Positions 1 to 52,504 of a DNA stretch of 64,000 nt are shown one piece after another; position 1 is the stretch's first letter, and each line of letters begins with the position of its first letter. Source of the DNA: Macrostomum hystrix (taxonomy: Eukaryota > Animalia > Platyhelminthes); assembly GCA_950097015.1 (NCBI GenBank), contig CATNEN010000035.1, positions 1,488,001 to 1,552,000 on the forward strand, given 5' to 3'. A program made the translations under genes and the position numbers. The notes under the pieces are model-generated. The model worked only from the letters and a program-made list of their open reading frames with translations. It was not told where the DNA came from and did no database searches.

Positions 1-366
1 AAAAGTTCGTCTGTCCGTTTTAAATTAATCCCCAGTGATTTTATTCATGCAGCTTTTGAAAAATCTGACATGAGATATTTTGTAAGCTCTAAGTTAATCA
101 TTCTTTCGAAAAATTTTCTTGAAGGGACTCTGTGATCCTTTTGAGTTTTAGTGCATTTTTAATAAACATTTTTACTTCGTAGAAATCGTCAGCAAATTTT
201 TACCAGCTCGGACTTACCTCTACTGATAAAGTTCCGACTATGCTACCAACAGTAGGCACAAATGAAAATTCACTTAAGTCTACAAAAGCTAGCAGAAAGT
301 TGAATCAGAGTCAAAGACAATTAAGATCAGTTTCACAGTCGCTTCCGGATTGGCTGGGCATAAAAC

Positions 367-404
367 TATAAAGACTGCAGGCATCAATTAGCAGCTGTTC
401 AGTT
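367..404 (+). promoter_or_regulatory. Core promoter of toxin-like gene 1: TATA (367-373) plus Inr-like TCAGTT (399-404)
   Basis: TATAAAG lies ~34 nt upstream of TCAGTT and ~100 nt upstream of the ATG. Both motifs are retained in copy 2 (TATA at 9993). Confidence 0.5.
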
Positions 405-474
405 CACTTTTCCCCTTGACTATCAAACTTCGAAACTAACAAGCATTAGATTGGAAATGACTGCTTCGTTGCGG

Positions 475-3400
475 ATGCCGACGAAGCAATTGACGCTGAT
501 ATTTAATGTGCTGCTATTGGCGCTACTGCAAGAAGCCGCAGCAGCTACGGAGTCGCCGATGTCATGGACCACGCGTGCTCCCACGACACCAGCACTTATG
601 CCGATCTCGACACCGGCGTCACCAGTCGACGGCTACTCGACGCAGCCGAGAGTGGCCGCAGCCCAGCTAGACCTGGCAGACCGAATGGCGGCCGAGCTGT
701 CCGACTGGGCCGGCCAGCTGGCCGAGTCTGGAGCTGATGTGGACAGCGTTCGACAGGCCAGGTACACGCGGACTGCAGCGGGCGCCATCGAGATGATCGG
801 AAACTTTCACAAGGTAATGAGCGCTCAAAAATGTTGTCTCTGTGAAATTCTCACTTTTCAACTTTTAGTTGTCAGTTTTTACATTGTTATTTTTCATTTA
901 AAGTAAAGTTTTTCGAGGCGCGCATTTTAAATTTTTGTTCCGATATGGTGCATTGTAGGTAATCCGAATTTCTGGAAAGGGACAGAACTTTAAATGGTGT
1001 CTGAGAATAATTTTCCATCTTCAAGTCCTGTCTAAGTAAATGCAGAAGGAGTTAAACAAAAGCTCACTGAAGACACTAAACTGCGCATTCAGCAATTCAG
1101 CTGTCAGATAACGATAAGCCAATGCGAGTCACGCGATCTACTTGGCATTCTTCGCAAACAGTTCTGCGAGTGTGCGCATGCGGTGCTGGCAAAATGGCTC
1201 CAATTAGGTTCGGATAAACAAAACCAGCCTGACGTTGAAAGCATTCTAGGCAGGCGGTGCAGAGGATGGATGGTCCGATAAGGGGCACAAAGGAGAGATA
1301 AATATTGGGAAAGCCAGCCTTTTGCTGGGTACATATAAAATGTACATTGACTTTGAATCATCAAGTTCGAAGGCATCTGAACCTTGAAAACTGCACGTGA
1401 CAAACTGTAAGCATAAGCAAGGACCTATTTTACCCCACAGAAGCAACAAGGCAAGAAGCCATTCCCAAAAGGCCAAAATCGCACCACATTCGGCCCAAAT
1501 AGGATTTATGTTCGCAACTAACCACATCGCAACAGCAACGACAATGATATATAAAGTTTGATAGATTTTAGGCTAGTAATACTTTAGATTAGCATTATAT
1601 ATCGACAACTCCGACAGCATAATATTACTTACCTAAAAAGCTGCTTTTGTATGCCTCTATGACGTCAAAAAAGAAAACATTTTTCATCGCATTAGCAATG
1701 TGATCATAACATGTCACAATTGAATTTGAAAACAAAAAACACTTCCAATTGTGACAAGATTAGCTTTTGTATCTTTACAATGAACGCTAAAGTGTAAATG
1801 CAACAGGGAAAATCATTTGAAGTTATTAAAAAGTCAGCTTTCCAAACTGAATGCAATTAAAAGCAAACGCAAAAACTTATTCACACAGAAACTGGGCATC
1901 GCTGCGAAATTGACTGCCTTTGTGGCCTCCATGCTGCTGCCCAGTGAGACCGAGGTGCTCACCGGCATCGTACTCCGTCGCTTCAGCGAGGTCAACCAGC
2001 GACTGACCAACATCGAGCAGCAGCTGCGACGAGCCACAAGCTCCATTCGAGTGTTGCAGGAGACGCAACAGACCCTCGCACCGTATCGCGATTGCCACAA
2101 TGCTGTGCGCAACGGAGCACAGAAGCGCTCCGACATTCTGTCCAGGATGCAGACGGCTACCACGAAGCGGCAGCTCGCTCGATTGGCCGAGGAGTTCTGC
2201 GTCTGGTACGAGACGTCCGAGATGGATGCTCGACTCTCGAATCTGCTCCGAGCGGCTACTCGAGAGACCACATCCGATATCGGAGCGAACCTGTTCCAGT
2301 CGTACGCTGAGCTTCACGGATGCAGCACGAGCCGACTCATCGAGCTCATGCTCGGACTTGTGCATGACATGGAGCTGGGAGCTGAGCTTCAACTCACCTA
2401 CCATTTCTTCAGAAATGGAGCGGAACGAGCGTCTGAGCATCGGCTCAAAGCAAAGACTGATCTCTATCGATTGCGATCAGCATTTGATCGACATTACTGG
2501 TACTGTCTTGAGAACACAAAAACAATGGCATCTCAAGCTGTTCGGAACCTGATGGAGGAGGCCACGAGGCGTGACATATTTGGCACTGCTAGCCACATTC
2601 TCGCAGGCCTAGAGAGTAGATTCCATCGATTTCGTTGGACAGTGGCCGTCGGTGCATCTGAGCTTCTGCCAAGCAGCTCATTTGATGCTGGAAACTTCTT
2701 CACATTGCCGACGACTCCAGCAGTGTTGGTGTCGTTCGCGGACAGCGGCCAGACTCTCCGGTGCTCAGACGCGAACTTGACGAGCACTCGTCTGATCTTC
2801 CGATGTCCGTCAGACTCTTGTGCGCTGGTAGCATCGAGAGGAACCATAGGAAGTCGGTCATGTCGAGGAGTGTCCGCAATCGGTGCTGATCGAGACTCTG
2901 AGTGGCTCGTCTCGATTCTGAGACACCGCGATGATCCCTGCTCATCTCCTGATGCGTGCAGCAGTCATGGTGTGTGTCGCCACAGTGCCGGCCTGACCGG
3001 TCCATTTTGTCAGTGCGAGCCAGAGTACCAAGGAGATCGATGCGCCATCAAGGAAGATACATCCGCAGTGTCGGCTAAGCTCATCGCCGACATGAGGGAC
3101 TCGGTCGGTCAGTTCGCTGGTGTCCAGACCACTGTGGATGTGTACTACCAACTGTTGGACGTGCAGTCGAATCTGGCCAGAGAGCTGCGAGGTTTGAGTG
3201 CCTGTACTGAGCTCAACAGACTCGTGAACTCAGAAACCATCAGCGAAGCATTGTACATGGCCGATATGAATGGCCAGTATCTCAAGAGTCGAAGAACGCA
3301 AAATCAGTTCGGCGAGCTCATGCAGCAACACATCGGTGCTCGAAACCTGGACTACTTTTTGAGAACCCTACTCCACCAACTTCTCGGAACAAATCAGCTC

Positions 3401-4717
3401 GGTCTTCCTGGTCGAGGAATAGTCAAACTGTTCAAGAGGTGCTGGGCCACGACTTTGGATTTTCCGCTATGTGGTCAGCGATACTCGCAATCTGTACAGC
3501 GTCTCATGACTGCTTTGGTTCTGATGGACGAGGCTGTAGGCGAAGCACTGATCAGCTACTTTAGTTGGAAGAAGAATGGAGTTAATACTGCTGACGAACT
3601 GGTGCTTTCATATTTGACTAGCGAGTATAAGAATCGCACAAGTCTATTGAGAGACCACTGGACAGCTCAGTCATGCCCTGCTTTAGTCTCCACGGATAAG
3701 CCACTCGGTCCGGGCATAGGTGACTGGAATCAGCGATTCTGCAATGACAGCCACAGTTTTGAGGGCCTCACAGTGAACGTCACTTGCTCCGCTGGTCTGT
3801 GGCGTCCTCGATCACCTCAGATCACGTGTCGTCGCGACCCCGACGGTCGTCTGAGCTGGTCGTCTGAGCCTCGATGCGATCGAGCCTGGTCAGCATGGTC
3901 AGAATGGTCCCGCTGTTCTGTGAGTTGCGGCAGCGGTCTGCAAACAAGGCACCGGTGTCTTGGAAACGATTGCATCAGGCGCGAGTTTGAAAGTCAGTCT
4001 TGCATCATAATCGATTGCTGTGTTGCTAGGTATGGCGATGGGAACTTCTTTAGGTGTCATCACTCACGTGGAAAACAATGTATTCAAAAGGACCGCGTTT
4101 GTGACGGCTTGCCAGACTGTTTAGATGCAACCGATGAGTCCGACTGCAAGTTTGTGCACGCCGGAGAGAGAGTCACACTACGCATCCAGTGGGGGAAAGC
4201 ATACGCGATCAATTGCTACTGTACTTCTCGTTGCCCCTTCCAGCCGAAATACTGCAAGCTGAAGTACTGCGCGAACTGGCAAACGGCGTGCGAGAGTCAG
4301 CACGCCCATTTCTATATCTACTCTCCGGATCGCAACTGGAGAGAGGTGATTCATAGCGGCGATACCATTGGTCTCATGTACGACTGGCATCCACACAACT
4401 GGCTGAGCTGCGGCGGTGGCGACAGTTGCAAGACGAACAGCTGCCCTGGTGGCGATGTCAGTCGCTTGAATCGCGGCTGTAGGGGAGAGAAGTTCGACAT
4501 CTACTCAGTCCAGAACGACGGGCGCTGCCGAGGCCAGTCGAATTGCAATGGACGGCCCATCAGGCGCGGAGAGTTGGTTGCTCTACGACACGCGTCCGGA
4601 TGGCTGAGCGCTCTGGCCATTGATACCGAAGTTCGACTGCGCAGCTGTCTTGGTCGACGTTCATTGGCCTGGGCCCAGGGTTGTCCGTATGAGGTGTGGA
4701 GGATCGATGTCCTGTGA
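475..4717 (+). CDS. SE-cephalotoxin-like secreted protein, copy 1; exons 475-813 and 1889-4717, ~1055 aa
   Basis: Signal peptide MPTKQLTLIFNVLLLALLQEAAA. Donor AAG|gtaatg at 813/814 and acceptor cacag|AAA at 1888/1889 join in phase 0. Motifs in order: EGF (CSSPDACSSHGVC..CQCEPEYQGDRC), Sushi-like (SFEGLTVNVTC..WSSEPRC), TSP1 (WSAWSEWSRCSVSCGSG), LDLa (CIQKDRVCDGLPDCLDATDESDC), then a Cys-rich tail with IHSGDTIGL/IRRGELVALR repeats. This order and size match SE-cephalotoxin of Sepia esculenta as I recall it. Confidence 0.88.
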
Positions 4718-6147
4718 GGATTGCCTAGAAGCAGGAACTATTTACATTTTGGCAACAATACAAACGAAAGTCTTAGTTTTATAATTTGCTGCAAGTTTAT
4801 TTCAAAGCACTAATTTAATTGCTCAAAGCCGTGCATGAAGGCAGTTTGTACTATTTTGTGATCTGTGAATTGCTGAAAATTCCAGAACCTTTCTGCACAA
4901 TAAACTTTTCCTCAGTGCAGAAAAGTTTCTCTAGATTTATTAAATATTTATCAAGTAGGGCTAGGAGAAACCACAAAAGCTAAGGGAAGTGCAATAGCCG
5001 TACTTACGAGGTTTAATACGGTTTCATTGTGGGGTCACAGATACTTTACATATGACAATCAATTGCATCCTCAATTCCTTCATCCATGAACTAATTTACA
5101 TCACGTGAAGTGTCTGCAGCTATAGTGAAAATATCGAGTACGATTATGCAACAATAAAATTTATGGGCTAAGCTATAAAAAATTGTGTTTTTTCAAATAC
5201 TTTTAATATACTTCAGTACCTTTACATTTTCAAGAGCAATAAGCTGAGGTTTTTCATCACAAATGCTTCTACCAGATAATTACAGCAATATATAGTTACA
5301 CCAGTTTTGGAAATCCTGCTTTAAACTCAACCTAATTTTTTCAATAATGTTGTTGAATGAAGTTCAGATTTGGCTTCTGTGTAGTCTTTATTACTAGAGC
5401 AGCATTCGTTTGAATATTGCACATTCTTTTTGTTTGCTGTCAATTACTGAATAGTAGTAATAGTAGTATGAGCACAGCTTGAAGGCTACCACTATTATAC
5501 TGTATTCAATCATGCAGCATCCGGTACTAGTCATCATTTTAGAGCCGATAAAATTCCGTCAACACTACCAAATCGATGGCAGATGCGGCATTCAGCGATG
5601 TTAAGTCATGTCAGCATGTCAACAGACGTGGTGCAGAACAAAGTCAATCAAAATGCACAGAGAGAACATTGAGTTTGAGTTCTTAAGACACTGGACATAA
5701 AGGATATAGAAATAAGTTAAATTCAGCCACTTTTATTACAAGTTTAGGAGAGATTTCTCCTGAGAATTGTACCTAACAATAATCTCCAACCAAGAGCACT
5801 GACGCACCCTGTCTGGGGAACCACAAACTGGCTGGCCGACGAGGCATTGCGAACTGCAAGACCAAAAATTGCCTTTCATCATTTAATACTTCGAATTAAT
5901 TCAAGCCGCAAATAGCTTTCAGTATCAATTCGTCCCTACATTAGATAATGGATACGTTCACATCTAATGTTTATCAGTGTTAACATCGTTAGACTAGATC
6001 TCTTTGCTCTCTTAAAAAGCAAAAGTGTTCACATTGAAATAAAAATTGCTTAACTTTTTCTTCATTGAAATGTTTCAAAACAGTTTGCGGTAAAGACTGT
6101 GGTTTATTCTGTTAACTAAAACTGTAAAATTGATTAATATTGATCGA

Positions 6148-6667
6148 ACAGCCGACAGAACACTCCAGCTATTGCGTGGCGCATCTGAAGGCTGCGTACA
6201 GCTGTTCATTAAATTGAATGGAGGATGCCCCACACTCGTACCCCAGGTGATGCTGCTTTGAAAGCTAAGTTTGCTACAAAAACCAATGCCTTCTTCAAAA
6301 CAAACAAAGACGAGTATAAATTTACTTTACAAATGCATCATTGAAGTCGTCTCCTCTTGCGCACATCGTTCGGCCGACGAAATATTGCACATAAATTGGT
6401 TGGCAGCACCGAGGAACTTGCTCTGAACCTCAGCGTTCTGGCGAATTTCTTCTGCCAAAATCTGCCAGCAGTGTCTGGCCAACTCAAACATTACTTTCGT
6501 CGGCCTTTAAAGGCCACCGCGTTTGATGTTAACTGGAGACGTCCTTGGCTGAAGCAATGCAGAGTTAAGTGTCTGGCTAAACACCAGGAGTTATTCCAGT
6601 GGAGTCAGGAAACGAGCCCCCGACCTTCAAATAGTGAGTCCGACACTAACAACCAGACTATAGCCCC
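6148..6667 (-). mobile_element. tRNA-derived CORE-like SINE, split by a ~290-bp insert (about 6257-6546)
   Basis: 6547-6667 matches the head and core of the copy at 35781 in reverse complement; 6148-6256 matches its 3' part. Confidence 0.65.
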
Positions 6668-6738
6668 TTCATTAATTATTAATTATTAATAAATTAGTGC
6701 ATTCAACCATTAAGTTTCATTAGTAAATTTTTATACAA

Positions 6739-6996
6739 GAGGTTGTAGCCCTTGTGGTTAGAGCGTCTGACTCAATACTTGAATGTCGCGGGGGTCGATT
6801 CTTGACTCCACTGGAACAGTTTGTGTGTTTTAGCAAGACACTTAACTCAGCATTGCTTGAGTTCACTCAGCTGTTAAATCGGTACCAGCATTAGCTGGGG
6901 TAATTGAGGGTCGGTTGAGTTGGGTGTGGGATGTCCCCTCCAGTCCATGGACTGAACAGCCGTACGCAGTCTTTAGATGCGCCGCGCAATAGCTGC
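6739..6996 (+). mobile_element. tRNA-derived CORE-like SINE
   Basis: A-box-like TAGCCCTTGTGG and degenerate B-box, then TTAGCAAGACACTTAACTC..CAGCTGTTAAATCGGTACC (CORE-like), then a 3' part shared with other copies in the window. Confidence 0.8.
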
Positions 6997-8025
6997 TGTA
7001 GAGAGTAGTAACATATTCCATTTGCTTAACGCGCTACTTAAAGTAATGTCACAAGGAGACCTAAGCTATAACTTTTAATCTATTTTTAGGAATGAATCAT
7101 ACTCTGTTTTTAGAAACAAAGTCATGTGAAATGAAACCGGAGAACCGGTTCTCGACAGCTGTATTTGTTTGAATTCCAAATATGGTAATGTTCACCTGAA
7201 AAACCCCCAAATCGCAGCTGAACAAACAAGTTTGACGTCACTGTGCAAATATGTATGCCCAATGTAAACACCCGGTCCTAAACCGGTTTTCTCCCAAAAT
7301 TTTACTATAAATACAAGCGAAAATCCGAGCTGAAAATTCAGACCCGGAGCGGTCTACCGGACTTCAAAACATCCTTTACGATGAAGAGGACTCATCTCTG
7401 AGGGAAAGTTGTAAGCGCTTTAGTAGACAGAGTTATTTATTGCTAGCAATAGTTGTTGAACTGAACTAGGTTTACGAGAGCCACATATCGTCGATACATT
7501 TGAGAAAGGCCTTCTTGTTTCCTAGGATACATTCCTAGAGGATTATTGATTGATTGATTTGAGTTATCCGTTATCTTTCAGAGGTAACGAAGAAGACGCC
7601 CATCAGGAGGACCTATTAGAGAGGCACAAGAGAGATTTCAATTGTTCACTAGGGCGCACGCTTCTATTGTGAATTCCGAGCTTGAGGAAACCGACAAGAA
7701 ATCAGATTCGCTCTCGTCCCTTATTGGCCAACAGACAAATTCAAGCGCAACAGACACGATCGACTAGCAGCTGTCAAGAAGACAAAGAAGACAAGAAGAC
7801 TACAAAGACTCAAGAAGCAGCAGAACCGATACTTCACGGTCCGATCAGCACAAGGAGAAGAAGAACCGCCGGCTTTCGAAGACCAAAGACTACGAACTAC
7901 CTACTACCAAGGAAGACGAAGCAACTGCAGTAAGTGTCACGTGACTCTTATAAATTCCTAGGCAATTTTCCCCATTGTCTTGAAGTGGGAGTTTTGTGTG
8001 TCTGATCAGAAAACAAAGCTCTTCA

Positions 8026-8110
8026 CTGCGGCTGTGCTGTCGGCTGCACATCTGGCCCAATCGGGGCAGGTGTAATCAAATAGTATTGTTATTATTAAAT
8101 TTATAATTAT
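8026..8110 (+). mobile_element. Isolated 3' tail of the same SINE family
   Basis: CTGCGGCTGTGCTGTCGGCTGCACATCTGGCCCAATCGGGGCAGGTGTAATCAA plus a TTA-rich tail is nearly identical to ~36030-36108. Confidence 0.7.
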
Positions 8111-8129
8111 ATTTGCAGAGCCATTATAT

Positions 8130-9190
8130 TTGCACATCTGTGCAAATAGTGCCGACACCTCCTGGCATCGTGGTCAGCCTATCAGGCCACGGATGACCTC
8201 GGTTGGCTCCGAAGTCCGTGCCTCGGCTGCGGCAGACAAGATCGGCACATCAGGGACGAGCAGAGGACAGCGCAGCGCACAACGTCGCACTGAGCGACGG
8301 CGTGAGCGCAACCGGCGTGGGCGACTTCAAGACGCCAGTCGTCCTCGGTCTCTGCCGCTTGAAGTACCCTATTCGCGGGCGCGTTCGCTGAGTATTCGCG
8401 TAGTATGCTGACATTAGCACTACCGTGAGAGCTACAGCTGAGAAGACGGTCCCGCTGATGCGACCGGCGGAGCGATCGCAGCCAGTCTGGCAGAGCGATC
8501 CGATGATCAGGCAGGCGCGGTTGTAGATCGAGCGACTCCGAAAATCCCGACGGCCCACTGATGACGCCAAGGACCAGTGGGCAGTGCAGCTGGCACTGAC
8601 GTGAGGAGCCGCGCAGTGTGGACGGCCGTTTGGACCCTGACGGGGCGCAAGAGGCGTGTGGCGCTAAATCTGACCGGCGACACTCCGTAGGAGCGCAGGA
8701 ATGAACTGCGCGACTTCTTCGCCGGCATTGTGAACGCGCCCTCGCCCCCGCTGCCAGCCAGTTTCGCACTGCCGACAGACACGGCCCTGCCAGCTGAGGA
8801 GGATTTTCGCACCAGCCCAGTCACCGTGGAGGACGTTGTGCGGTTCGCTCGGAGAATATCAGGCGGTAAGGCGCTTGGCCCCGACAAGGTTCCAATCGAT
8901 GCGCTGCTGCTCCGCCGTGTGGCTTCCCAAGTCACAGGCGCGATAAACCACGTGCTCGCTGGCGCCCCGGCGCCCCTGTTCGATGATGTAGCGCACTTCG
9001 TACCGATCCCGAAGAGGGCCGGGACAACGCGGAAAAAATATCAGCGCGGGATCTCGCTTATGTCCTGCATGCACCGCGAAGTTTTTCAACTGACTGCTTC
9101 CCGATCGCCTGCAGTCGGTGCTGGACTCGAACCTCCATTTCGAGCAATTACGGGTTCCGGTACAGTGACCCAGATCCTCGCACTCTGCGA
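8130..9190 (+). mobile_element. Degenerate RTE-clade LINE fragment (linker plus RT N-terminus), 3'-truncated
   Basis: KALGPDKVPIDAL, FVPIPKRAG..YQRGISLMS and TVTQILAL correspond to non-LTR RT pre-motifs. Stops and frameshifts upstream. Confidence 0.8.
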
Positions 9191-9513
9191 TCCTTTCAAG
9201 TTTTAGTGCATTGTTAATACTCATTTTTTACTTCGTAGAAATCATGAGCAAGTTTTTAACAGCTCGGACTTACCACTACTGGTAAAGTTCCGACTATGCT
9301 ACCAACAGTAGGAACAATGAAAATTCACTTAAATCTACAAAAAAACTAGCAGAAGGAGTCTAAGACAATTATGATCGGTTTCACAGTCGCTTCCGGATTT
9401 GCTTGGGATAAAACTATGAAGACTGTAGGCATCAAATAGCAGCTGTTAATTTCGCTTTTCCCCTTGACTATCAAACTTCGAAACTAACTAACATTTGCTT
9501 GGAAGCGAAGCAA
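9182..9513 (+). pseudogene. Relic third copy of the toxin-gene promoter/5' end; start-codon segment deleted
   Basis: Aligns with 127-488 at roughly 85% by eye. TATAAAG has become TATGAAG. ttggaa[atgactgcttcgttgcggatgccga]cgaagcaa is collapsed to ttggaagcgaagcaa. Confidence 0.75.
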
Positions 9514-10101
9514 AGTCCTCGAACATCTGCAGCCAAATGTTCACATCAATATCTGCAGAACCGGAAAACTTTGGGGGTAAAAGTGCGTTTTTTGGATGCC
9601 ATGGTAAGCTGATATTGTCAAGCTGAGTTACCGCTGCCACACATGTAAGATTAGCCTTTAGGTAGGCACGAAGCCCATGAGAGACAGCCTAAGCTGACTG
9701 CAGGTTAATATTTGAAAGCTTTGGGGTTGCGCCGACACGCACCCCAGCACGTTGCACGATGCACATTCGAGAATGTACATAGTGTACACAGTCGATACCT
9801 TACAATAGAAATCGTCAGCAAGTTTTTACCAGCGCGGACTTACCTCTACTGATAAAGTTCCGACTATGCTACCAACAGTAGGCACAAATGAAAATTCACT
9901 TAAGTCTACAAAAGCTAGCAGAAAGTTGAATCAGAGTCAAAGACAATTAAGATCGGTTTCACAGTCGCTTCCGGATTGGCTGGACATAAAACTATAAAGA
10001 CTGCAGGCATCAATTAGCAGCTGTTCAGTTCACTTTTCCCCTTGACTATCAAACTTCGAAACTAACAAGCATTAGATTGGAAATGACTTGCTTCGTTGCG
10101 G

Positions 10102-13100
10102 ATGCCGACGAAGCAATTGACGCTGATATTTAATGTGCTGCTATTGGCGCTACTGCAAGAAGCCGCAGCAGCTACGGAGTCGCCGATGTCATGGACCACG
10201 CGTGCTCCCACGACACCAGCACTTATGCCGATCTCGACACCGGCGTCACCAGTCGACGGCTACTCGGCGCAGCCGAGAGTGGCCGCAGCCCAGCTAGACC
10301 TGGCAGACCGAATGGCGGCCGAGCTGTCCGACTGGGCCGGCCAGCTGGCCGAGTCTGGAGCTGATGTGGACAGCGTTCGACAGGCCAGGTACACGCGGAC
10401 TGCAGCGGGCGCCATCGAGATGATCGGAAACTTTCACAAGGTAATGCGCGCTCAAAAATGTTGTCTCTGTGAAATTCTCACTTTTCAACTTTTAGTTGTC
10501 AGTGTTTTACATTGTTATTTTTTATTTAAAATAAAGTTTTTCGAAGGCGCGCATTTTTAATTTTTGTTCCGATATGGTGCATTGTAGTCGATCCGAATTT
10601 CTGGAAAGGGACAGAACTTTAAATGGTGTCTGAGAATAATTTTCCATCTTCAAGTCCTGTCTAAGTAAATGCAGAAGGAGTTAAACAAAAGCTCACTGAA
10701 GACACTAAACTGCGCATTCAGCAATTCAGCTGTCAGATAACGATAAGCCAATGCGAGTCACGCGATCTACTTGGCATTCTTCGCAAACAGTTCTGCGAGT
10801 GTGCGCATGCGGTGCTAGCAAAATAGCTCCAATTAGGTTCGGATAAACAAAACCAGCCTGACGTTGAAAGCATTCTAGGCAGGCGGTGCAGAGGATGGAT
10901 GGTCCGATAAGGGGCACAAAGGAGAGATAAATATTGGGAAAGCCAGCCTTTTGCTGCGTACATATAAAATGTACATTGACTTTGAATCATCAAGTTCGAA
11001 GGCATCTGAACCTTGAAAACTGCACGTGACAAACTGTAAGCATAAGCAAGGACCTATTTTACCCCACAGAAGCAACAAGGCAAGAAGCCATTCCCAAAAG
11101 GCCAAAATCGCACCACATTCGGCCCAAATAGGATTTATGTTCGCAACTAACCACATCGCAACAACAACGACAATGATACTGTATATAAAGTTTGATAGAT
11201 TTTAGGCTAGTAATACTTTAGATTAGCATTATATATCGACAATTCCGACAGCATAATATTACTTACCTAAAAAGCTGCTTTTGTATGCCTCTATGACGTC
11301 AAAAAAGAAAACATTTTTCATCGCATTAGCAATGTGATCATAACATGTCACAATTGAATCTGAAAACAAAAAACACTTCCAATTGTGACAAGATTAGCTT
11401 TTGTATCTTTACAATGAACGCTAAAGTGTAAATGCAACAGGGAAAATCATTTGAAGTTATTAAACAGTCAGCTTTCCAAACTGAATGCAATTAAAAGCAA
11501 ACGCAAAAACTTATTCACACAGAAACTGGGCATCGCTGCGAAATTGACTGCCTTTGTGGCCTCCATGCTGCTGCCCAGTGAGACCGAGGTGCTCACCGGC
11601 ATCGTACTCCGTCGCTTCAGCGAGGTCAACCAGCGACTGACCAACATCGAGCAGCAGCTGCGACGAGCCACAAGCTCCATTCGAGTGTTGCAGGAGACGC
11701 AACAGACCCTCGCACCGTATCGCGATTGCCACAATGCTGTGCGCAACGGAGCACAGAAGCGCTCCGACATTCTGTCCAGGATGCAGACGGCTACCACGAA
11801 GCGGCAGCTCGCTCGATTGGCCGAGGAGTTCTGCGTCTGGTACGAGACGTCCGAGATGGATGCTCGACTCTCGAATCTGCTCCGAGCGGCTACTCGAGAG
11901 ACCACATCCGATATCGGAGCGAACCTGTTCCAGTCGTACGCTGAGCTTCACGGATGCAGCACGAGCCGACTCATCGAGCTCATGCTCGGACTTGTGCATG
12001 ACATGGAGCTGGGAGCTGAGCTTCAACTCACCTACCATTTCTTCAGAAATGGAGCGGAACGAGCGTCTGAGCATCGGCTCAAAGCAAAGACTGATCTCTA
12101 TCGATTGCGATCAGCATTTGATCGACATTACTGGTACTGTCTTGAGAACACAAAAACAATGGCATCTCAAGCTGTTCGGAACCTGATGGAGGAGGCCACG
12201 AGGCTTGACATATTTGGCACTGCTAGCCACATTCTCGCAGGCCTAGAGAGTAGATTCCATCGATTTCGTTGGACAGTGGCCGTCGGTGCATCTGAGCTTC
12301 TGCCAAGCAGCTCATTTGATGCTGGAAACTTCTTCACATTGCCGACGACTCCAGCAGTGTTGGTGTCGTTCGCGGACAGCGGCCAGACTCTCCGGTGCTC
12401 AGACGCGAACTTGACGAGCACTCGTCTGATCTTCCGATGTCCGTCAGACTCTTGTGCGCTGGTAGCATCGAGAGGAACCATAGGAAGTCGGTCATGTCGA
12501 GGAGTGTCCGCAATCGGTGCTGATCGAGACTCTGAGTGGCTCGTCTCGATTCTGAGACACCGCGATGATCCCTGCTCATCTCCTGATGCGTGCAGCAGTC
12601 ATGGTGTGTGTCGCCACAGTGCCGGCCTGACCGGTCCATTTTGTCAGTGCGAGCCAGAGTACCAAGGAGATCGATGCGCCATCAAGGAAGATAATTCCGC
12701 AGTGTCGGCTAAGCTCATCGCCGACATGAGGGACTCGGTCGGTCAGTTCGCTGGTGTCCAGACCACTGTGGATGTGTACTACCAACTGTTGGACGTGCAG
12801 TCGAATCTGGCCAGAGAGCTGCGAGGTTTGAGTGCCTGTACTGAGCTCAACAGACTCGTGAACTCAGAAACCATCAGCGAAGCATTGTACATGGCCGATA
12901 TGAATGGCCAGTATCTCAAGAGTCGAAGAACGCAAAATCAGTTCGGCGAGCTCATGCAGCAACACATCGGTGCTCGAAACCTGGACTACTTTTTGAGAAC
13001 CCTACTCCACCAACTTCTCGGAACAAATCAGCTCGGTCTTCCTGGTCGAGGAATAGTCAAACTGTTCAAGAGGTGCTGGGCCACGACTTTGGATTTTCCG

Positions 13101-14351
13101 CTATGTGGTCAGCGATACTCGCAATCTGTACAGCGTCTCATGACTGCTTTGGTTCTGATGGACGCGGCTGTAGGCGAAGCACTGATCACCTACTTTAGCT
13201 GGAAGAATGTTTCAGTTGATACTGCTGACAAACTGGTGCTTTCATATTTGACTAGCGAGTATAAGAATCGCACAAGTCTATTGAGAGACCACTGGACAGC
13301 TCAGTCATGCCCTGCTTTAGTCTCCACGGATAAGCCACTCGGTCCGGGCATAGGTGACTGGAATCAGCGATTCTGCAATGACAGCCACAGTTTTGAGGGC
13401 CTCACAGTGAACGTCACTTGCTCCGCTGGTCTGTGGCGTCCTCGATCACCTCAGATCACGTGTCGTCGCGACCCCGACGGTCGTCTGAGCTGGTCGTCTG
13501 AGCCTCGATGCGATCGAGCCTGGTCAGCATGGTCAGAATGGTCCCGCTGTTCTGTGAGTTGCGGCAGCGGTCTGCAAACAAGGCACCGGTGTCTTGGAAA
13601 CGATTGCATCAGGCGCGAGTTTGAAAGTCAGTCTTGCATCATAATCGATTGCTGTGTTGCTAGGTATGGCGATGGGAACTTCTTTAGGTGTCATCACTCA
13701 CTTGGAAAACAATGTATTCAAAAGGACCGCGTTTGTGACGGTTTGCCCGACTGCTTGGATGGCTCTGACGAATCCGGCTGTAATTTTATCCGCGCTGGCC
13801 AGCTGATTTCGCTTCGGGCCTTGCCATTTCCTGCCTATACAGTAAACTGCTACTGCGCGTCTAGGTGCCTCTTTCAGCCAATTTACTGCAACGTCAAGTA
13901 CTGTAGCAACTGGCACACCGGGTGCTCCGATACATACGCCTTGTTCTACATTTACTCACCGACGCGCCGACCCGGGGAGGTTATCCACAGTGGCGACACG
14001 GTTGGTTTCATGTACGATTGGGGTAGGCACAATTGGCTCAGCTGCACCTGGCGCGACAGCAGGTGCACAACGCGCAACTGCCCTGGTGGCGACGTCAGCC
14101 AAGTGAACGCTCGCTGCGGCGGCGAGAAGTTCATGCTCTTGTCGGTGCAAAATGATGGCCGTTGTCGAGACCAATTGAACTGCATAAATCGGCCTATCCG
14201 GCGTGCCGAGGCTGTGGCACTGAAGCACCCGTCAGGATGGCTTAGTGCCCCAGCCATGGACACGGATGTTCAGGTGCGAGGCTGTCTACAGCATCAATCA
14301 ATGTTGAGAGCGCCCGGCTGCCCGAATGAGGTGTGGCGAATCTACAACTGA
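10102..14351 (+). CDS. SE-cephalotoxin-like secreted protein, copy 2; exons 10102-10440 and 11523-14351, ~1055 aa
   Basis: Same splice sites as copy 1 (AAG|gtaatg at 10440; acag|AAA at 11523). Intact ORF with the same domains and a divergent C-terminal domain. Confidence 0.88.
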
Positions 14352-17300: not shown

Positions 17301-17925
17301 GCTGTCGCAGTTTCTCACGCCTATCAGGGTCTGTTGAACTGGAGACGGGCACGTTTGCAGATCCCACTGCGCAGTCTGTGATAATAACAAACAACTGAGC
17401 TTCTTTTGTCTTGTCTACTCTGAGGCTTTCTTTTTGCTTTCGTTTTCCTCGGTCAAGTAACCGCAATGCTCACCCACTTATCGAAGATTTATTGTTCGCA
17501 AAGTCGCGTACTTCTTAGTTTCTTGCAGCAGGGCATGTAAACACGCTGATTGTTTCTGGACATAAATCTGAGCTATTTTGAACTGTCGTAGGTGGACTCA
17601 CCTACATTTTGGGCTATGAGCGGAGTGGAGTGTCGACTTTGAAGTTGGTGACAAACGAATTGCAAGGACAAGAAATGTTGGAACGTGAGACAAACAACTG
17701 GGATTAGAGAAGGACAAATCGTTGATTTATCTAACTATATCGTGACATTTTAGCTACGAGTAGAAAATGTCGACTGCGTTGCTGTTTTGTGACGCCTTTG
17801 AAGCTTCTTTTTTGAACATTTTTTGTATTTATGGTGTTATTAACCTACCAGCTCCGTCAGGTAGTTGCTGTGCTACTATCTAAGGCATAAAAGTTCAAGC
17901 AAATGGGAGCGATTCTGACGGCGCA

Positions 17926-18170
17926 GCCGGAAGGTTGCCAGCCGAGAGGTTTGCCAGCCGGAAGGTTGCCAGCCGAGAGGTTTGCCAGCCGGAAGGTTGC
18001 CAGCCGAGAGGTTTGCCAGCCGGAAGGTTGCCAGCCGAGAGGTTTGCCAGCCGGAAGGTTGCCAGCCGAGAGGTTTGCCAGCCGGAAGGTTGCCAGCCGA
18101 GAGGTTTGCCAGCCGGAAGGTTGCCAGCCGAGAGGTTTGCCAGCCGGAAGGTTGCCAGCCGAGAGGTTTG
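17926..18170. repeat. 31-bp minisatellite (GCCGGAAGGTTGCCAGCCGAGAGGTTTGCCA), ~8 copies
   Basis: Direct reading; 31-aa periodicity in the overlapping ORFs. Confidence 0.95.
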
Positions 18171-19578
18171 ACAGCAGAAGGAATGCAGAAGGAATCAAAA
18201 TAATATCAAAGTAAATGATAAAATCTGCGCATCGTTGCTCAATAGAGACAAAAACAGCTTGAGAAGTGCTAATGCACAAATTGCGTACTGGTAGCCACAG
18301 TTAGAGGAACAGAGGACTCGCTTCTCATGCAACGCCATATTTGTGGAGTCAGGTTTAGACCCTAGTCTATAAATACACTCGTTAATGGAGCTTCTGCTAC
18401 AATGGGTTATTTGGCATGTGTGACGACAGCTGCCCGCGCATTGCTACTACCAATTATCCTGTTCTCCCCAATATACTCCACCCATTCTTCTGCTAGCTCC
18501 CCGCTGATAGATCACTCAGCATTATTGCCAACCCGACGTTTTGCGTCACGCCAGTATGCATTGTGCCTATTTTTAGCAATAGAAAAAATAGAATTAGAGA
18601 ACCACTGAACCGGCGGTGGCACTACCAACATGCAGCTGGTGGACTCGAGAGTCTAAATTTGTGTGTGAAGAGAAATCGAATTACGCTCGGATAGACTAAA
18701 ATAGACCTGGCTTTCAAATAAGCCAAGCAACTGACATGACAAAACTGACTTCAATTTATTTTAGTTGGAATGAAAATGTGAGAATTTAAGTTTTTATCAA
18801 CAGTGACTCATTTGATCCCAACGGTGAAAACAATGTTTCAAATCCATTTTGCAGCAACAACAAACTATTTTAGCAACGGCACTCAATCGGCCTCTTTAAA
18901 AAATAACTGTTTACCGGTTAGATTTTTTTTAAATAGCGAGCGCTTGAAGGCTAAGTTAAGATAAGGCTTTGGAGAGGCAGAATTAGCGAGTCAGCACAGC
19001 AGCAGATACTCGAGGCAAGAAAAGTACTCAAGGGAAGATTTCACTGCTGCTTAATCTTTCGTCAGCTGGCTAATACGAGTATTTTTCTCTTTATTCCTCA
19101 TTTCCACTCCTGTGACGTATAAATAAAATCGGCAGTCATGCGACACAATGTACCATGTACATGATGTACATACTCATAATGTACACATGAAAGCGCCGAA
19201 GATTCAGTGCCATGCAAAGGGCAACGCCATTAATTATAGAATGTTAAAAACGGGCAAAAATAATAGATAAGAAGCAACAACCGATAGGGAGGAAGAGAGG
19301 GAGAGCAGAAGAGAAGTCAAAAGTACCACTGCAAGAGACAGCTTATCTTTAGCTTTGGCAAGCTCGGGGACTGCTTCACTTTAACAAGAGGACGGCAGGC
19401 TTGGCATGGCGCGCTCACGTGATTATTTCTGTATTTTTCAAGCTAAAAACACATGATTCGGTGACTTTCGAAGGCAAGGAATGCTAGCAACGTTCTGCTA
19501 TGCGAGCGTGTGGACTTTCCGGTCAGAGGCCAAACTCCACTGTTTTAGTCCGCGAACGATTTTACAAAACAGGAGAAC

Positions 19579-19988
19579 CTATTCTTTGGGGCGATTCTCT
19601 CGAGTGATTCTTTGGGGCGATTCCTAAAGTGATTCTTTGGGGCGATTCCCTAAAGTGATTCTTTGGGGCGATTCCCTAAAGTGATTCTTTGGGGCGATTC
19701 CGTCGAGTGATTCTTTGGGGCGATTCTCTCGAGTGATTCTTTGGGGCGATTCTCTTGAGTGATTCTTTAGGGCGATTCTCTCGAGTGATTCTTTGGGGCG
19801 ATTCTCTCGAATGATTCTTTTGGGCGATTCTCTCGAATGATTCTTTTGGGCGATTCTCTCGAGCGATTCTTTGGGGCGATTCTCTCGAATGATTCTTTTG
19901 GGCGATTCTCTCGAGTGATTCTTTTGGGCGATTCTCTCGAATGATTCTTTGGTGCCATTCTTTTGAGTTATTCTTTGGGGCGATTCCA
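19579..19988. repeat. 26-bp minisatellite (GATTCTTTGGGGCGATTCTCTCGAGT)
   Basis: Direct reading. Confidence 0.95.
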
Positions 19989-22069
19989 TTCAAAGACAAG
20001 GAATGCTAGCAATGTTCCGCAATGCTAGCGTGTGGACTTTCCGTTCAGAGGCCAAGCCTTTTCCCTTACGATGTACGATGTGCAGAAATCGATGAGCCTA
20101 AATCTACAGTGTGTGGATATTGTAATTGATACTCTAGTCACAATTAGAGGATTAATATTAGGATAGTGCGTGTTAGGATATTGCATACCTTTATCTAGCA
20201 CCACACCCTGCTATGAGTGACTGGGGTGAGTTTAGCTGAAAACTAAAACCTTGCCCAATTCGACTACTCAGGGCATCCAGCGCCTCAGTAAGAGAACCTC
20301 AGTCAGCCGAGTCTCTCCTGTCTATAAATGAGATCTGATAAACCTGTCAAAAGTACATGTGACCGATTAGCATGACTGCAGCAAACAGGCCAGTGCCACT
20401 GCACTTAAGAAGTCTGTTTGTGCAACCGTAACGGCTGACACTTGCACTACAGCTTGTAGTTTAGTAGTTCTGTGTCTCTAATTTTCTTCTCAGCTCAAAT
20501 AATTTGACAAAGCAAAAGATAAGTTTCAAATTTGTATTAACTTTCAAAAGCGGGTCTCAAAGCGTTTGAAAAAACTCGGAGAATATTTATTAGTTTTAAA
20601 GGACAGAAATTCCGGATTAACTCATAATATGACACGTAGCTGAGGCCTTTTAAAATATTTACATGCCTCACGGATTTGTACACATCACATGTGATGGCAA
20701 AAGGTGCGAAGAAAAGAAAAATCTTGACTCTGTTTAAACCGGAGGATGGGACAAGGACAGACCAAAAGCAATAATATTTAACGGGGCGGTCACAATTAAT
20801 TAGGAAATATCGCATTTCATAGAAGACTTACACAGCGGGCTAAGGTCAGAAAGTCAAGTGCGAAACACTGATTGATTGGCCATAAAATATGCAGGAAAAT
20901 ACAGGTGCGAAACAAAGTAAGGGAAGAAAGTCATGTATTTACAGACTCGACAAATACGGCTTTACCAATATAAGGAAATTTCATAGGATTGGGCTTGGCT
21001 AATAGCTGAGAATTAAAAAACGCCAAGCAAAGGTGTGGCTTAGCAAAGATTGCCCGCCGGCTGCAAAAGAAAACGAGGCCAGGTATAGGCAGGTGGACAC
21101 TAAACTAAACTGTACAATAACTTCATGGGCGCAATGAGTGGGCTATCTTTTATAGATCAGTTTTCTTGAGCAGACTTCGAGAAGGGCGCGATAGATAATG
21201 CATAAAGAGAAAAAACAACAACAACAAAAAACACAAAGCTTGGCGCAGAATCTACCGTTTAGGCTGAGAAAATCCATGTCGCGCCTTTACGGTGTAACTA
21301 GAGTAGAGAACAAACAGAACCGACTTCAAAGTCAATAGACAGCATAGAAAACAACTGGATTATGAAAATGTAATACACAGAGGATTGCATTGTGTGAGCG
21401 GCTTGCGATGACGCAGTTGGGACACTGGGCACTAAACGAAACGAAAATGATTTTAGTTCACCTGTTACTATAGGTTAATAGAACACAATGTTAGATACTT
21501 GTAACACAAACAGCAAGCGGTAGGAGGTAGCAGAGAGGGGACAAGGAGAGTGGGGGCGAGACAAAGACCTATCTGGAACCGCAACAAAAAGGTGGCGAGG
21601 TATTTGGTGTCAAATATATAATATTACCTAAATTTAGGCTTAGCCTAAATTCAATTTTTGCTAATACGAACTATTGAACTAATGTGCACTAATTTTAATA
21701 TTTATAATTAACCTTAAGGCCGATGCCACAGCCATAATAATTAGGGTGGGGGTTTGGTAGCACTTCGAATCAGGCGCCGATACGTAATTGTTGATGTTAA
21801 GGCAATTATAGGTGACAGCAGTCATTTTTTATTACACCCTGGCCTAAATTAGTGTCAATTTTACAGCAAGCACGCATACGCTACAGTCTCAACTATTAGC
21901 GTTAATAAACTGATCTATAAATAAGTAATTTTATTACTCGAGTGGCTAATTAGAAAATTCCTAAAACAGTTAGGTATTTACGAGCGAAAACAAGTGGAAT
22001 TGCTGGGAGCGGGCAGTTAGTTAGGTAGGTAGGCAGGTAGGCAGGCAGGTACGGCGTGCGCCGATCTTG

Positions 22070-23752
22070 TCAGGACAGGATGCAGCGCAGCAGGGCACTG
22101 CGATTGCGCTGGGCGGGCAGCGAGGCAAGGGCTTCGGCGGCGGCCTCAGGTGCGACGACTGGCAGGCGAGTGACGCGCGGTGTCTGGTCGTCGGCGTAGA
22201 AGTCGAATATTCCGCGCTTGCTGGCGTTGCCAGCGTGACCGTTAGAGAAGATGACGTTGTCCTTGAACTTGACGCAGTTTTCCTCGGCCTGATCTGTCCG
22301 GCTGCTTCTCTGCATGCGACTGCCATAGAGGAACATTTTCGGCCTGGACAGATTGGAGCAGGCAGGTGAGATACTGCTTATGTGCTTACACAGTTAGCTA
22401 CACAATATGTTGACTGCACTGCAGTTTATCTGATACGGGATGAATTCAAAACCATGCGGGCGCACTATTATTTTTCCTGGGCAGAGTGCAACTGATGAGA
22501 GTAGTAACTGCGGATGTGACTCAACAATTTAAAATCTCGTCACGTGACAACGTAAGGACATAAGGGGCTTATACTATTTGTGGACTTAGTTTCCTGACAT
22601 ATGACCTAAAACCTGGCTTACAATTTAAATGCATGGCCCAGTAGTTGCATATGCCATATGTATTTTGTAAAGTGCAGAGTTAAGTGTCTTGCTAAAGGAC
22701 ACAATTTGTTCCAGTTGAGTCGGGAATCGAACCCCCGACCTTCAAGTCGTGAGTCCGACGCCCTAACCACCAGGCTACAACCTCTTAAAGTACAGGAAGC
22801 ACAGGACAAGAAGGAAAGTATTAGCTAATTATTGTTGGCTAAATGCCAAAAATCTATTAGTTTATGCGCTATCGCAAGATATGCTGATCCCAACAGCTAC
22901 TCACTTGAGCCGCAGAACGAGGTCGTCGTAGAGCGAGTTAGTCGGCACCGAGTGGGAAATAAGCACGTCGATATTGTCAGGCACATTCGACCAGACCGTC
23001 TTCAATTCATTGACAGACTTGCCGAAGCCGCGGCCAACAGCGCCACGCCGGCTGGCGGACCATGGAACGCCGTAGAAGCGGACGCCCTCGATGACACACT
23101 CAGAGTCCTGCAGGTAGATGCAGTTAGGCAACAGCGCCTGCACTCTTTCCCGATCCTCCGAGTCGAAGAAGATCTCGTTCGGTCCGGGCACGAAGATCTT
23201 ATAGCGATGCGGCATGGCAGCGAAGAAGCTGTTGATGGCCTTGACCTGGTTCACAAACTCGGTGTCCTTGAAGAAGTGCTTCCGAAACTGGTAACTGCAC
23301 AGGTTGCCAGAGTGGACTAGTACATCGGCTTCAAACACAGCAGAACAGCCATTGTCGGACAAGTCGCAGGTGTCGCTAACGTGGGCAATACGAAGGAACG
23401 GCGACTTTGGATTCGGGCTGCCGACAACATAGACCTGCGGCTTGACCATAAGGTGTTCCTGCGGCTTATTTACAATTGGGTCCTCCTGGTCCCACTGCGA
23501 AGTGGAATTGCCAGTCTGCTGTGTCTGCTGCGAGCCGTTCATGTAGGCGTTTCCAGTTGCCACGTTGCCGGCTGGAAAAACAATCTGCCCTTGATGGCAG
23601 CGATGTGGCTGCTTCAAGCGGAACAGCCGCTTGAACGGCTTCAGTATCTGTGGAGATTTGCTGCTGACGGCTGCTGTAGATGCTAGTACTGCCGGGGCTG
23701 AATGATATGGGCTGTGCTCGAGAATGCCGTGGCTGGTTTGGCCAATGCTCAT
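22070..23752 (-). CDS. MPPED1/MPPED2-like metallophosphoesterase-fold protein, probably catalytically impaired; exons 23752-22905 and 22343-22070, 373 aa
   Basis: HVSDT, DVLVHSGN, YKIFVPG, IYLQDSEC.IEGVRFYGVPW, IDVLISH and RLKPK follow MPPED2 in order. Donor CTCAA|gtgagt and acceptor tccag|G give phase 2; spliced length 1122 nt. An in-frame stop at 23786-23788 lies upstream of the ATG. Confidence 0.85.
22670..22784 (-). mobile_element. SINE head and core inside the MPPED-like intron
   Basis: Reverse complement is GAGGTTGTAGCCTGGTGGTTAGGGCGTCGGACTCACGACTTGAAGGTCGGGGGTTCGATTCCC... Confidence 0.8.
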
Positions 23753-26684: not shown

Positions 26685-27150
26685 TCTTATCTCTCCCCTG
26701 TCTCATCTCTCCCCTTTCTTATCTCTTCCCTGTCTCATCTCTCCCCTTTCTTATCTCTTCCCTGTCTCATCTCTCCCCTGTCTCATCTCTCCCCTGTCTT
26801 ATCTCTCCCTGTCTTATCTCTCCCCTGTCTCATCTCTCCCCTGTCTCATCTCTCCCTGTCTCATCTCTCCCCTGTCTCATCTCTCCCCTGTCTCATCTCT
26901 CCCCTGTCTTATCTCTCCCCTGTCTTATCTCTTCCCTGTCTCATCTCTCCCCTGTCTCATCTCTCCCCTGTCTCATCTCTCCCTGTCTCATCTCTCCCCT
27001 GTCTCATCGATCTCTCCCCTGTCTCGTCTCTCCCCTGTCTCATCTCTCCCCTGTCTCGTCTCTCCCCTGTCTCATCTCTCCCCTGTCTCGTCTCTCCCCT
27101 GTCTGTCTCGTCTCTTCCCTGTCTCATCTCTCCCCTGTCTCATATCTCCA
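26685..27150. repeat. 16-bp CT-rich minisatellite (TCTCATCTCTCCCCTG)
   Basis: Direct reading; same unit as 51144-52470. Confidence 0.95.
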
Positions 27151-30862: not shown

Positions 30863-31286
30863 TTAAAGAAATGATTAAATAATTTTCGGATTGTTTGAGA
30901 GCATTTGGAGCTCTGTTACTATACTTGTTATACTGACTGAAAGAAAAAAATATATTGCTTTTATGCTCGGATTTTACTACAGTAAGTAAAAAAGTATATT
31001 GAATGTTAATAAACTACTCTCAAGCCACATCAATCTACTCGCTGATTATCTTAAACTTAGCTAGGCTCGTACATGTCGCCAGCTTACTCAAATTTGGGCT
31101 AACTCGAGCGACTCAAACCGAACTCTCGTCAAAATGGGTCCGCTTAGCCTCAGGTAACTTTGCCAACAGAGCGTCATTCTGGTTAACTCCAAAATTTAGA
31201 GAAAATGTTAGTAAATGGCCTCCTAATTACCCTCTTATTTTGGATTGCTTAGAGTTTTCAGGTTAAAGATACATGACTCTACTATA

Positions 31287-36700: not shown

Positions 36701-37096
36701 ATAACAGTGATAACTAAGGAGAAAGCCTTCTATTCGAGATCTTATATAGAACACTATCTGGTAGCTTAGGACGCGAAAACTGGAACCTAGCATACTGAAT
36801 GAAGCGGTATCAGTGAATATTATCAGTAGAATTCAGAATCTGTATTCAATTGTTCTACTTTATTAGGATGTTTTATTTCATACAGCATCCAACTGGTAGG
36901 GCAAAAATATGACCTCCGATTCTCTGGGGTAAAATAAGTCATCTAAAAATCTCTATGAAAACGGATAAAATACTAACGTAGAAGGTTGATTTTTAAAGGT
37001 TAATTATAATTATTGCTAAACAATCGAAACATCTACTGTCAGTAGCTAAAAAGTGTGTCAATTTTTTTGTACGAATCTAAAAAAAACGAAAATAGT

Positions 37097-52470: not shown

Positions 52471-52504
52471 CATCGTTCCAGTGTCATGTCTCCGAGTCTC
52501 AACT

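Follow-up and report, generated by a model that had tools for sequence, protein, structure and literature searches.

Two neighbouring SE-cephalotoxin-like genes in Macrostomum with bodies probably homogenised by gene conversion and distinct beta-trefoil tips

Introduction

SE-cephalotoxin is the only sequenced paralytic protein of the cuttlefish salivary gland, with a mode of action that is unknown (PMC4986456; bioRxiv 10.64898/2026.04.09.716377), and a lineage duplication, represented by deca-ctx1 and deca-ctx2, has been reported for decapodiform cephalopods too (bioRxiv 10.64898/2026.04.09.716377). Surveys of the venoms and toxins of cephalopods, cnidarians, nemerteans and fish list proteins annotated as SE-cephalotoxin-like, again with an unknown mode of action. 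Here we describe a head-to-tail pair of genes, designated copy 1 and copy 2, that appear to belong to this SE-cephalotoxin-like (CTXL) family, on a stretch of 64,000 nucleotides from the flatworm Macrostomum hystrix (assembly GCA_950097015.1, contig CATNEN010000035.1, positions 1,488,001 to 1,552,000 of the forward strand), hereafter called the window. The copies are nearly identical over most of their length, here called the body, and differ strongly in their C-terminal part, the tip. We consider it likely that they are an old tandem pair whose bodies have been homogenised by recurrent gene conversion, with the distinct and equally old beta-trefoil tips being kept.

Interlocus gene conversion that affects only part of a gene is familiar from primate globin, opsin and RH gene pairs. 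To our knowledge, conversion confined to part of a gene has not previously been described in the CTXL family, and a search of the literature on these Macrostomum genes found nothing relevant.

Identity profile of the two copies

Self-BLASTN of the window paired positions 180-4705 with positions 9806-14342. The first-pass annotation, made from the letters of the sequence, had described two almost identical toxin-like copies, and the coordinates that it gave for them were correct: 180-4107 of copy 1 and 9806-13741 of copy 2 were ~99% identical. In a global alignment scored in 100-column windows, identity was 98-100% from ~264/9890 to ~4100/13740, fell to 56-73% from there to the stop codons at 4717 and 14351, and was ~40% past both stops, where the sequences are unrelated. 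No BLASTN match was found between the 3' flanks of the two copies, in agreement with what had been claimed of them.

Both copies lie on the plus strand. In copy 1, the upstream part of the homogenised tract (180-456) is followed by exon 1 (457-813; 119 codons from the ATG at 457 to a phase-0 donor with GT at 814-815), a GT..AG intron of 1075 nt (814-1888, AG at 1887-1888) that lies within the tract, and exon 2 (1889-4717), which is divided into the body (1889-4107) and a tip of type 1 (4108-4717). Two M. lignano protein models, P0002 and P0025, place the exon junction at the same point. Copy 2 consists of an upstream part of the tract (9806-10082), exon 1 (10083-10440), a GT..AG intron (10441-11522) with splice-site bases that align to identical ones in copy 1, the exon-2 body (11523-13741) and a tip of type 2 (13742-14351). 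As had been noted in the first pass, both exon-2 frames stay open across the junction and have the same length, 966 codons. The predicted products of the pair have ~1055-1061 amino acids; that of copy 1, with 1061, equals P0025 in length.

The few differences within the tract were spread over upstream, intron and exon alike and amounted to 33 substitutions plus indels. Mismatches numbered 4/277 in the upstream part, taken as 180-456 against 9806-10082 (1.4% divergence), and 14/1075 in the intron (1.3%), with 7 further gap columns; exon 1 had 1 substitution and one single-base length difference, and the exon-2 body at 1889-4107 had 14/2219 mismatches. In the adjoining segment 4108-4200, by comparison, 40/93 positions were mismatched. 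Since the identity spans the intron and the upstream DNA, it is not explained by selection at the protein level, and 3.9 kb at 99% identity beside saturated synonymous sites cannot be due to chance. Both edges of the tract were sharp. The dense mismatches at the 3' edge began exactly at 4108/13742, the codon after C-D-G in the LDLa module, which is the point at which a collapse of identity had been proposed. At the 5' edge, positions 100-179 were 69% mismatched and identity started abruptly at 180/9806.

A small variable patch stands within the near-identical body at 3531-3596 and 13165-13230. It holds 10/16 of the exon-2 frame differences preceding 4109, comprising 8 amino-acid changes and 1 synonymous change, with an N-x-S sequon gained in copy 2; because synonymous changes are so few, the patch is not an unconverted relic.

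In addition to the two full copies, an older and partial third copy of the upstream region, here called the relic, was found on the plus strand at 9182-9504. With 86.5% identity to 127-456 and 86.4% to 9806-10082, it is about equally distant (~86% identical) from both full copies, which points to an earlier round of exchange. The relic stops one base short of where the ATG would fall, and 301 nt of unique sequence (9505-9805) come after it. This arrangement suggests layered exchange events and a putative non-homologous 5' junction of the latest one.

The start of exon 1 in copy 1 is hydrophobic and, judged by eye only, resembles a signal peptide; the protein is putatively secreted. In copy 2, the first ATG lies in a different frame owing to the single-base length difference in exon 1; an in-frame ATG further along gives 113 open codons to the donor, the signal-like stretch included. 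The length difference could be an error of sequencing, or it could reflect early decay or a shift of the start.

The corresponding loci in Macrostomum lignano

Two loci in Macrostomum lignano were compared with the window, on contigs NIVC01000469.1 (L001) and NIVC01002446.1 (L002). L001 contains the same head-to-tail pair, consisting of gene A (encoding P0001) and gene B, and L002, which is ~98% identical to L001, carries the pair again; its second copy is referred to as B'. A minus-strand gene ~8 kb downstream of B' in L002 showed 78-88% amino-acid identity to the neighbour gene at 22073-23776 on the minus strand of the window, which matched no Pfam family. As this downstream gene is conserved, the window and the M. 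lignano loci are regarded as syntenic.

The contrast between body and tip was also present in M. lignano. A four-way DNA alignment showed A and B to be ~100% identical in the body and 61-69% identical in the tip, and L002 gave the same pattern. The first dense mismatch between A and B corresponded to position 4162 of the window, 54 nt downstream of the break in M. hystrix and just past the LDLa module. At the other end, the tract in M. lignano started only ~45 nt ahead of exon 2, and identity between A and B was ~76% in their exon-1 regions; the tract in the window reaches 277 nt upstream of the ATG.

Two irregularities were seen in the M. lignano sequences. Gene B in L001 (~17597-20459) is in two pieces separated by one frameshift, which could have arisen as an indel in assembly; the L002 counterpart reads without interruption. 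In L002, the GenBank model PAA57781.1 (P0025, 10001-21413) passes from exon 1 of the first gene to exon 2 of the second, leaving out the first gene's own exon 2, and represents either an annotation artefact arising from the identical bodies or a read-through transcript.

Different histories of body and tip

Body sequences were most similar within species. Identity was 98.6% between copy 1 and copy 2, 97-100% between A and B and ~75% between species. Synonymous divergence (dS) in the body was 0.005 between copy 1 and copy 2 and 0.018 between A and B', against ~1.4 between species, where non-synonymous divergence (dN) was ~0.155. The differences between the bodies of copy 1 and copy 2 comprised 12.5 non-synonymous and 2.5 synonymous changes.

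The tips gave the opposite grouping. The tip of copy 2 was 78% identical to that of gene B versus 62% to that of copy 1, and the tip of copy 1 was closest to that of gene A. The distribution of informative amino-acid sites, 16:4:2, favoured ((copy 1,A),(copy 2,B)) at a bootstrap of 1997/2000 on what are four sequences only. The dN of the tip was 0.149 between copy 2 and B and 0.231 between copy 1 and A, compared with 0.27-0.29 for the other pairs (0.292 between copy 1 and copy 2). Synonymous sites in the tip were saturated in every pair, with a proportion of synonymous differences (pS) of ~0.75, which bears out the many synonymous tip differences reported in the first pass; with dN far below the saturated dS, the tips have been under purifying selection overall. 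Bodies thus group by species and tips by gene position, indicating that the duplication and both tip types predate the split of the two species. With the tips being old and having positional orthologues in M. lignano, the recent and repeated event is the overwriting of the body, not an exchange of tips.

Comparison of L001 with L002 provided a second, more recent view of the same process. In the body, 6 sites were locus-specific, with a variant common to both genes of a locus, 4 were gene-specific and 2 were cross sites; in the tip, 198 sites were gene-specific and 0 locus-specific. These mosaic body sites beside gene-specific tip sites indicate that exchange is still going on.

The two tip types differed in rate. 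Lineage-specific amino-acid changes numbered 19 (copy 1) and 11 (A) in type 1 and 8 (copy 2) and 4 (B) in type 2, so that type 1 tips evolve ~2.5x faster than type 2 in both species.

Family membership and domain composition

A Pfam scan of the exon-2 frame identified EGF (residues 375-411), TSP1 (692-730) and LDLa (744-777) domains and found nothing for the last 189 residues, nor for exon 1; the trefoil described below occupies residues 778-966. The copy 1 body thus consists of a helical N-terminal region, the EGF domain (2939-3049), a helical region of CTXL_M type, TSP1 (3890-4006) and the first half of LDLa (4046-4107), and its tip of the second half of LDLa (to 4147), the beta-trefoil (4148-4714) and the stop. 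The equivalent positions in copy 2 are 12573-12683 for EGF, 13524-13640 for TSP1, 13680-13741 and up to 13781 for the two halves of LDLa, and 13782-14348 for the beta-trefoil, followed by the stop.

The nearest proteins were two M. lignano clusters (90% clusters) with 74-78% identity. For the M. lignano orthologues, matches to PF27742 (CTXL_M), TSP_1 and Ldl_recept_a are precomputed; those with the PF27742 record are 74-76% identical to the window proteins, which themselves gave no CTXL match in the Pfam scan at E <=0.1, in a local Pfam copy that may lack the model. An exhaustive phmmer search with the tip only located it at the C-terminus of a 1062-amino-acid lungfish protein annotated as 'SE-cephalotoxin-like' (XP_043921898.1, P0004). 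BLASTP of copy 1 exon 2 against this protein gave 26% identity over 1023 columns (E 1e-93), in an alignment running end to end from the N-terminal helices to the last strand, and the order of domains was the same, with EGF, TSP1, LDLa and a C-terminal Cys-rich domain. A coral 'SE-cephalotoxin-like' protein was a further family member, the sole one found in a word-indexed search with the lungfish protein; the same type of search with an alignment of window, M. lignano and lungfish sequences returned only the two M. lignano clusters. PF27743, an N-terminal family, is carried by the lungfish and coral proteins and has no recorded match in the Macrostomum proteins. On the strength of the full-length homology to the lungfish protein, the same domain order and the coral member, both window genes are assigned to the CTXL family, a predicted membership that rests on proteins annotated as '-like'. 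The label 'toxin-like' given in the first pass therefore holds as a family assignment.

An AlphaFold2 model of the full-length protein, built on a 5-sequence alignment, was poor, with a predicted local distance difference test (pLDDT) score of 53, and Foldseek matched only the trefoil in it. Lysenin and clostridial trefoil-containing proteins also appeared as matches to the full-length model, with high root-mean-square deviation, and were dismissed as not meaningful.

Fold of the tip

From exon-2 residue 765 onwards the two tips were identical at 125/201 positions (62%), close to the ~60% obtained by hand count in the first pass, and the trefoil taken alone was 61% identical. The statement that every cysteine is kept was borne out, all 16 Cys columns of the tip being present in the two window copies and likewise in the two genes of M. 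lignano. A three-fold repeat became visible when 17 tip-like sequences were aligned. Modelled on its own with AlphaFold2, the tip reached a pLDDT of 85 and a predicted template-modelling (pTM) score of 0.85. The best Foldseek matches of this model in the PDB were MIR-type beta-trefoils (TM 0.57-0.66, E 2.5e-6 to 1e-4), namely N-terminal domains of the inositol trisphosphate (IP3) and ryanodine receptors, an SDF2-like protein and the MIR domain of Pmt4. The modelled tip is a beta-trefoil with MIR-type domains as its nearest solved folds.

Sequence comparison gave no corresponding signal. Pfam MIR did not match the window proteins at E <=0.1, and a search of the tip against PDB sequences, as a single sequence or as a profile, returned nothing significant (best profile E 0.56); the sole MIR match, sub-threshold at E 0.007, was in a distant relative, P0006. 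The earlier description of the tip as beta-trefoil or MIR-like thus stands for the fold (TM ~0.6), but not for membership of the Pfam MIR family. Substitutions between the tips, set against secondary structure, showed no clear clustering; strands, loops and helices all carried them, and no surface stood out as an obvious hot spot.

The set P0003-P0020 includes short proteins of ~130-250 amino acids that represent the same Cys-rich trefoil and come mostly from ENA, Logan and JGI contigs. One of them has a piece of LDLa ahead of the trefoil, and the Prymnesium protein P0006 matches in five stretches. These sequences may be gene fragments or members of a wider stand-alone domain family.

Origin and maintenance of the boundary

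Drawing on the profile of identity, the conflicting groupings of body and tip, the boundary common to both species, the ongoing exchange, the tip fold and the family assignment, all of them directly seen, we favour the following history. A tandem pair with two trefoil types would have been in place before the split from M. lignano. Non-allelic gene conversion between the neighbours would then have repeatedly overwritten one body with the other, independently in each lineage, in tracts that begin 277 nt upstream of the ATG and end midway through LDLa in the window, and that in M. lignano begin ~45 nt ahead of exon 2 and end shortly beyond LDLa. Conversion would never have run through the ~600 nt encoding the trefoil, which would thereby have kept a separate history. 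Gene conversion had already been named as a possible process in the first pass, and the grouping of bodies by species and tips by position, with silent sites and intron included in the identity, agrees with it.

Several points weigh against this history. The pair is known from assembled sequence. Synonymous sites being saturated, orthology of the tips depends on amino-acid sites and dN from only four sequences, and the sites in the last third of the tip gave a mixed signal, 2:1:2. A test of GC content at third codon positions (GC3) gave 0.57 for the converted body and 0.66-0.67 for the tip, and hence no sign that conversion was GC-biased. A clean homologous replacement at the 5' end is hard to reconcile with the relic promoter copy and the 301 nt of unique sequence, and the latest event may have been more complex. 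Finally, the length difference in copy 2 exon 1 and the frameshift in L001 gene B may reflect decaying copies or sequencing errors.

Two forces may act at the boundary: the high divergence of the tips, which would block extension of the heteroduplex, and selection, which would remove conversions that erase one of two functionally different trefoils. Probably selection and tip divergence hold the boundary jointly. The same conversion history with a purely mechanical boundary, at which mismatches stop the tracts and the trefoils are functionally equivalent, seems to us rather unlikely, even though the boundary sits at the collapse of identity, its 54-nt shift between species is as expected for tracts creeping up to a divergence barrier, and the amino-acid differences are not concentrated in one secondary-structure class, a point that speaks against a role of selection. 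What argues for selection and against mechanics alone is that both tip types stayed open with all their cysteines over a dS of ~1.4, with dN far below dS; that in neither lineage, for all the continuing conversion, has the boundary moved more than 54 nt from the domain junction; and that type 1 tips gathered ~2.5x more lineage-specific changes than type 2, which suggests different constraints.

If the trefoil is a ligand- or target-binding module, as we infer, the pair would offer one common body in two binding versions. In its strongest form, with the boundary held by selection, it would be a pair of 'one body, two targeting domains' with two old trefoils aimed at different ligands, prey or tissues. 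We put this forward tentatively, as one chance among several and not the likeliest, and different binding by the two trefoils is itself conjectural. Were it true, conversion would keep the common body co-adapted by spreading an improvement in one copy to the other. A weaker possibility is that one promoter reaches either tip by splicing, should the PAA57781.1 model be real.

Cassette-like exchange, in which a constant body gains tips from family members or from stored tip fragments, corresponds to the exchangeable tip that had been proposed by analogy with polymorphic toxins, and we now regard it as improbable. It would suit the sharp junction near a domain boundary, the relic upstream copy, which implies at least one event with a non-homologous end, and the stand-alone or fragmentary trefoil-only proteins in environmental data. 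However, only two tip types were seen, in the same gene order in both species and at both M. lignano loci, each with positional orthologues and under purifying selection. The further tip variants that the first-pass annotation expected did not appear: TBLASTN found no third copy, orphan tip or other tip or body fragment in the 64-kb window, L001 or L002, and among the M. lignano proteins these two types, forming two 90% clusters, were the only ones present. The 54-nt offset of the 3' junction between species, moreover, is what independent conversion tracts would give and does not suit a fixed recombination site.

An assembly artefact, in which a collapsed or mis-joined repeat makes two genes seem to share one body, has very little probability in our judgement. 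The genome is very repeat-rich, minisatellite arrays cover much of the window, and the copies were seen in assembled sequence; but the copies differ throughout the tract, both frames are open through the junction, and the same architecture occurs at two separate loci in an independent assembly of another species. The history of old tips and converted bodies is likewise to be preferred to a recent duplication of the whole gene followed by very fast divergence of the tip under positive selection, to which we give hardly any credence: the ~1% difference in body and non-coding parts and the mostly non-synonymous changes in the body (12.5 vs 2.5) would suit it, but a tip pS of 0.75 stands right beside a body pS of 0.005 and protein selection does not raise dS, each tip type is closer to its M. 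lignano counterpart than to the other tip in its own genome, and the 3' flanks are unrelated.

Other features of the window

Long minisatellite arrays with units of 16-37 nt occupy much of the rest of the window, from 17924 to 61738. Examples are 31286-32628 (a 20-mer in 67 copies), 37096-38672 (a 33-mer in 48) and 51144-52474 (a 16-mer in 83), the family of the last recurring at 26679-27149. An open reading frame (ORF) on the minus strand at 42827-43663 gave a strong match to Pfam ECH_2 (enoyl-CoA hydratase/isomerase) and is probably an exon of a metabolic gene adjoining a minisatellite. None of the ORFs tested between and beyond the two copies matched any other Pfam family.

Comparison with known systems

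SE-cephalotoxin from the cuttlefish's posterior salivary gland (UniProt B2DCR8, as cited in PMC4986456 and bioRxiv 10.64898/2026.04.09.716377) and the '-like' proteins of corals, nemerteans and lungfish form the family closest to the Macrostomum pair. The likeness extends to a length of ~1050-1075 amino acids, alignment over the full length to annotated members, the order EGF, TSP1, LDLa and C-terminal Cys-rich domain, and CTXL_M in the M. lignano orthologues; for the cuttlefish protein itself it is indirect, the comparison having been made with proteins annotated as '-like'. A difference is that the host here is a flatworm and that the genes are tied to no known venom gland or toxicity. The locus splits a CTXL protein into a part that is kept uniform and a beta-trefoil that is kept in two old versions. 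This split points to the trefoil as the specificity-bearing module, the tip presumably setting target or glycan specificity, and provides a concrete hypothesis for the cephalotoxin-like family.

MIR domains, as found in the N-terminal parts of IP3 and ryanodine receptors, in SDF2-like proteins and in protein O-mannosyltransferases, resemble the tip in their three-fold repeat and trefoil fold. They differ in being cytosolic or located in the endoplasmic reticulum, whereas the tip has 16 cysteines and is predicted to be extracellular, and in sequence, to which the tip has no significant match.

Bacterial polymorphic toxins such as the Rhs and contact-dependent inhibition (CDI) systems are alike in outcome only, with a long conserved N-terminal part, a divergent C-terminal domain and an abrupt junction between them. 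In these systems the variable tip is a toxic domain of many types that is moved by recombination and followed by orphan tips and immunity genes. In the Macrostomum pair, on the other hand, the tip has a binding-type fold and comes in two old types only, TBLASTN detected no orphan tips in the window, L001 or L002, and there is no conserved downstream ORF and no immunity-like neighbour.

The practical and conceptual interest of the locus lies with its mode of evolution. It represents a tidy, dated case of part-gene conversion, for which M. lignano offers replicate loci and a second species an orthologous pair, and is useful for studying what stops conversion tracts. Near-identical bodies of this kind will mislead short-read assembly, transcript quantification and gene models, and at least one GenBank model (PAA57781.1) appears to fuse both genes. 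As in other cases of partial interlocus conversion, the paralogs are near-identical within species and diverged between species with silent and intronic sites included, the tract ends are sharp, the flanks have an older, gene-specific history, and mosaic sites occur at recently separated loci. The pair differs from them in that the exempt segment is a whole protein domain and that two species a dS of ~1.4 apart both have the tract end no more than 54 nt from one and the same domain junction. As a process this is partial interlocus gene conversion of the ordinary sort, and the system is not of a new kind.

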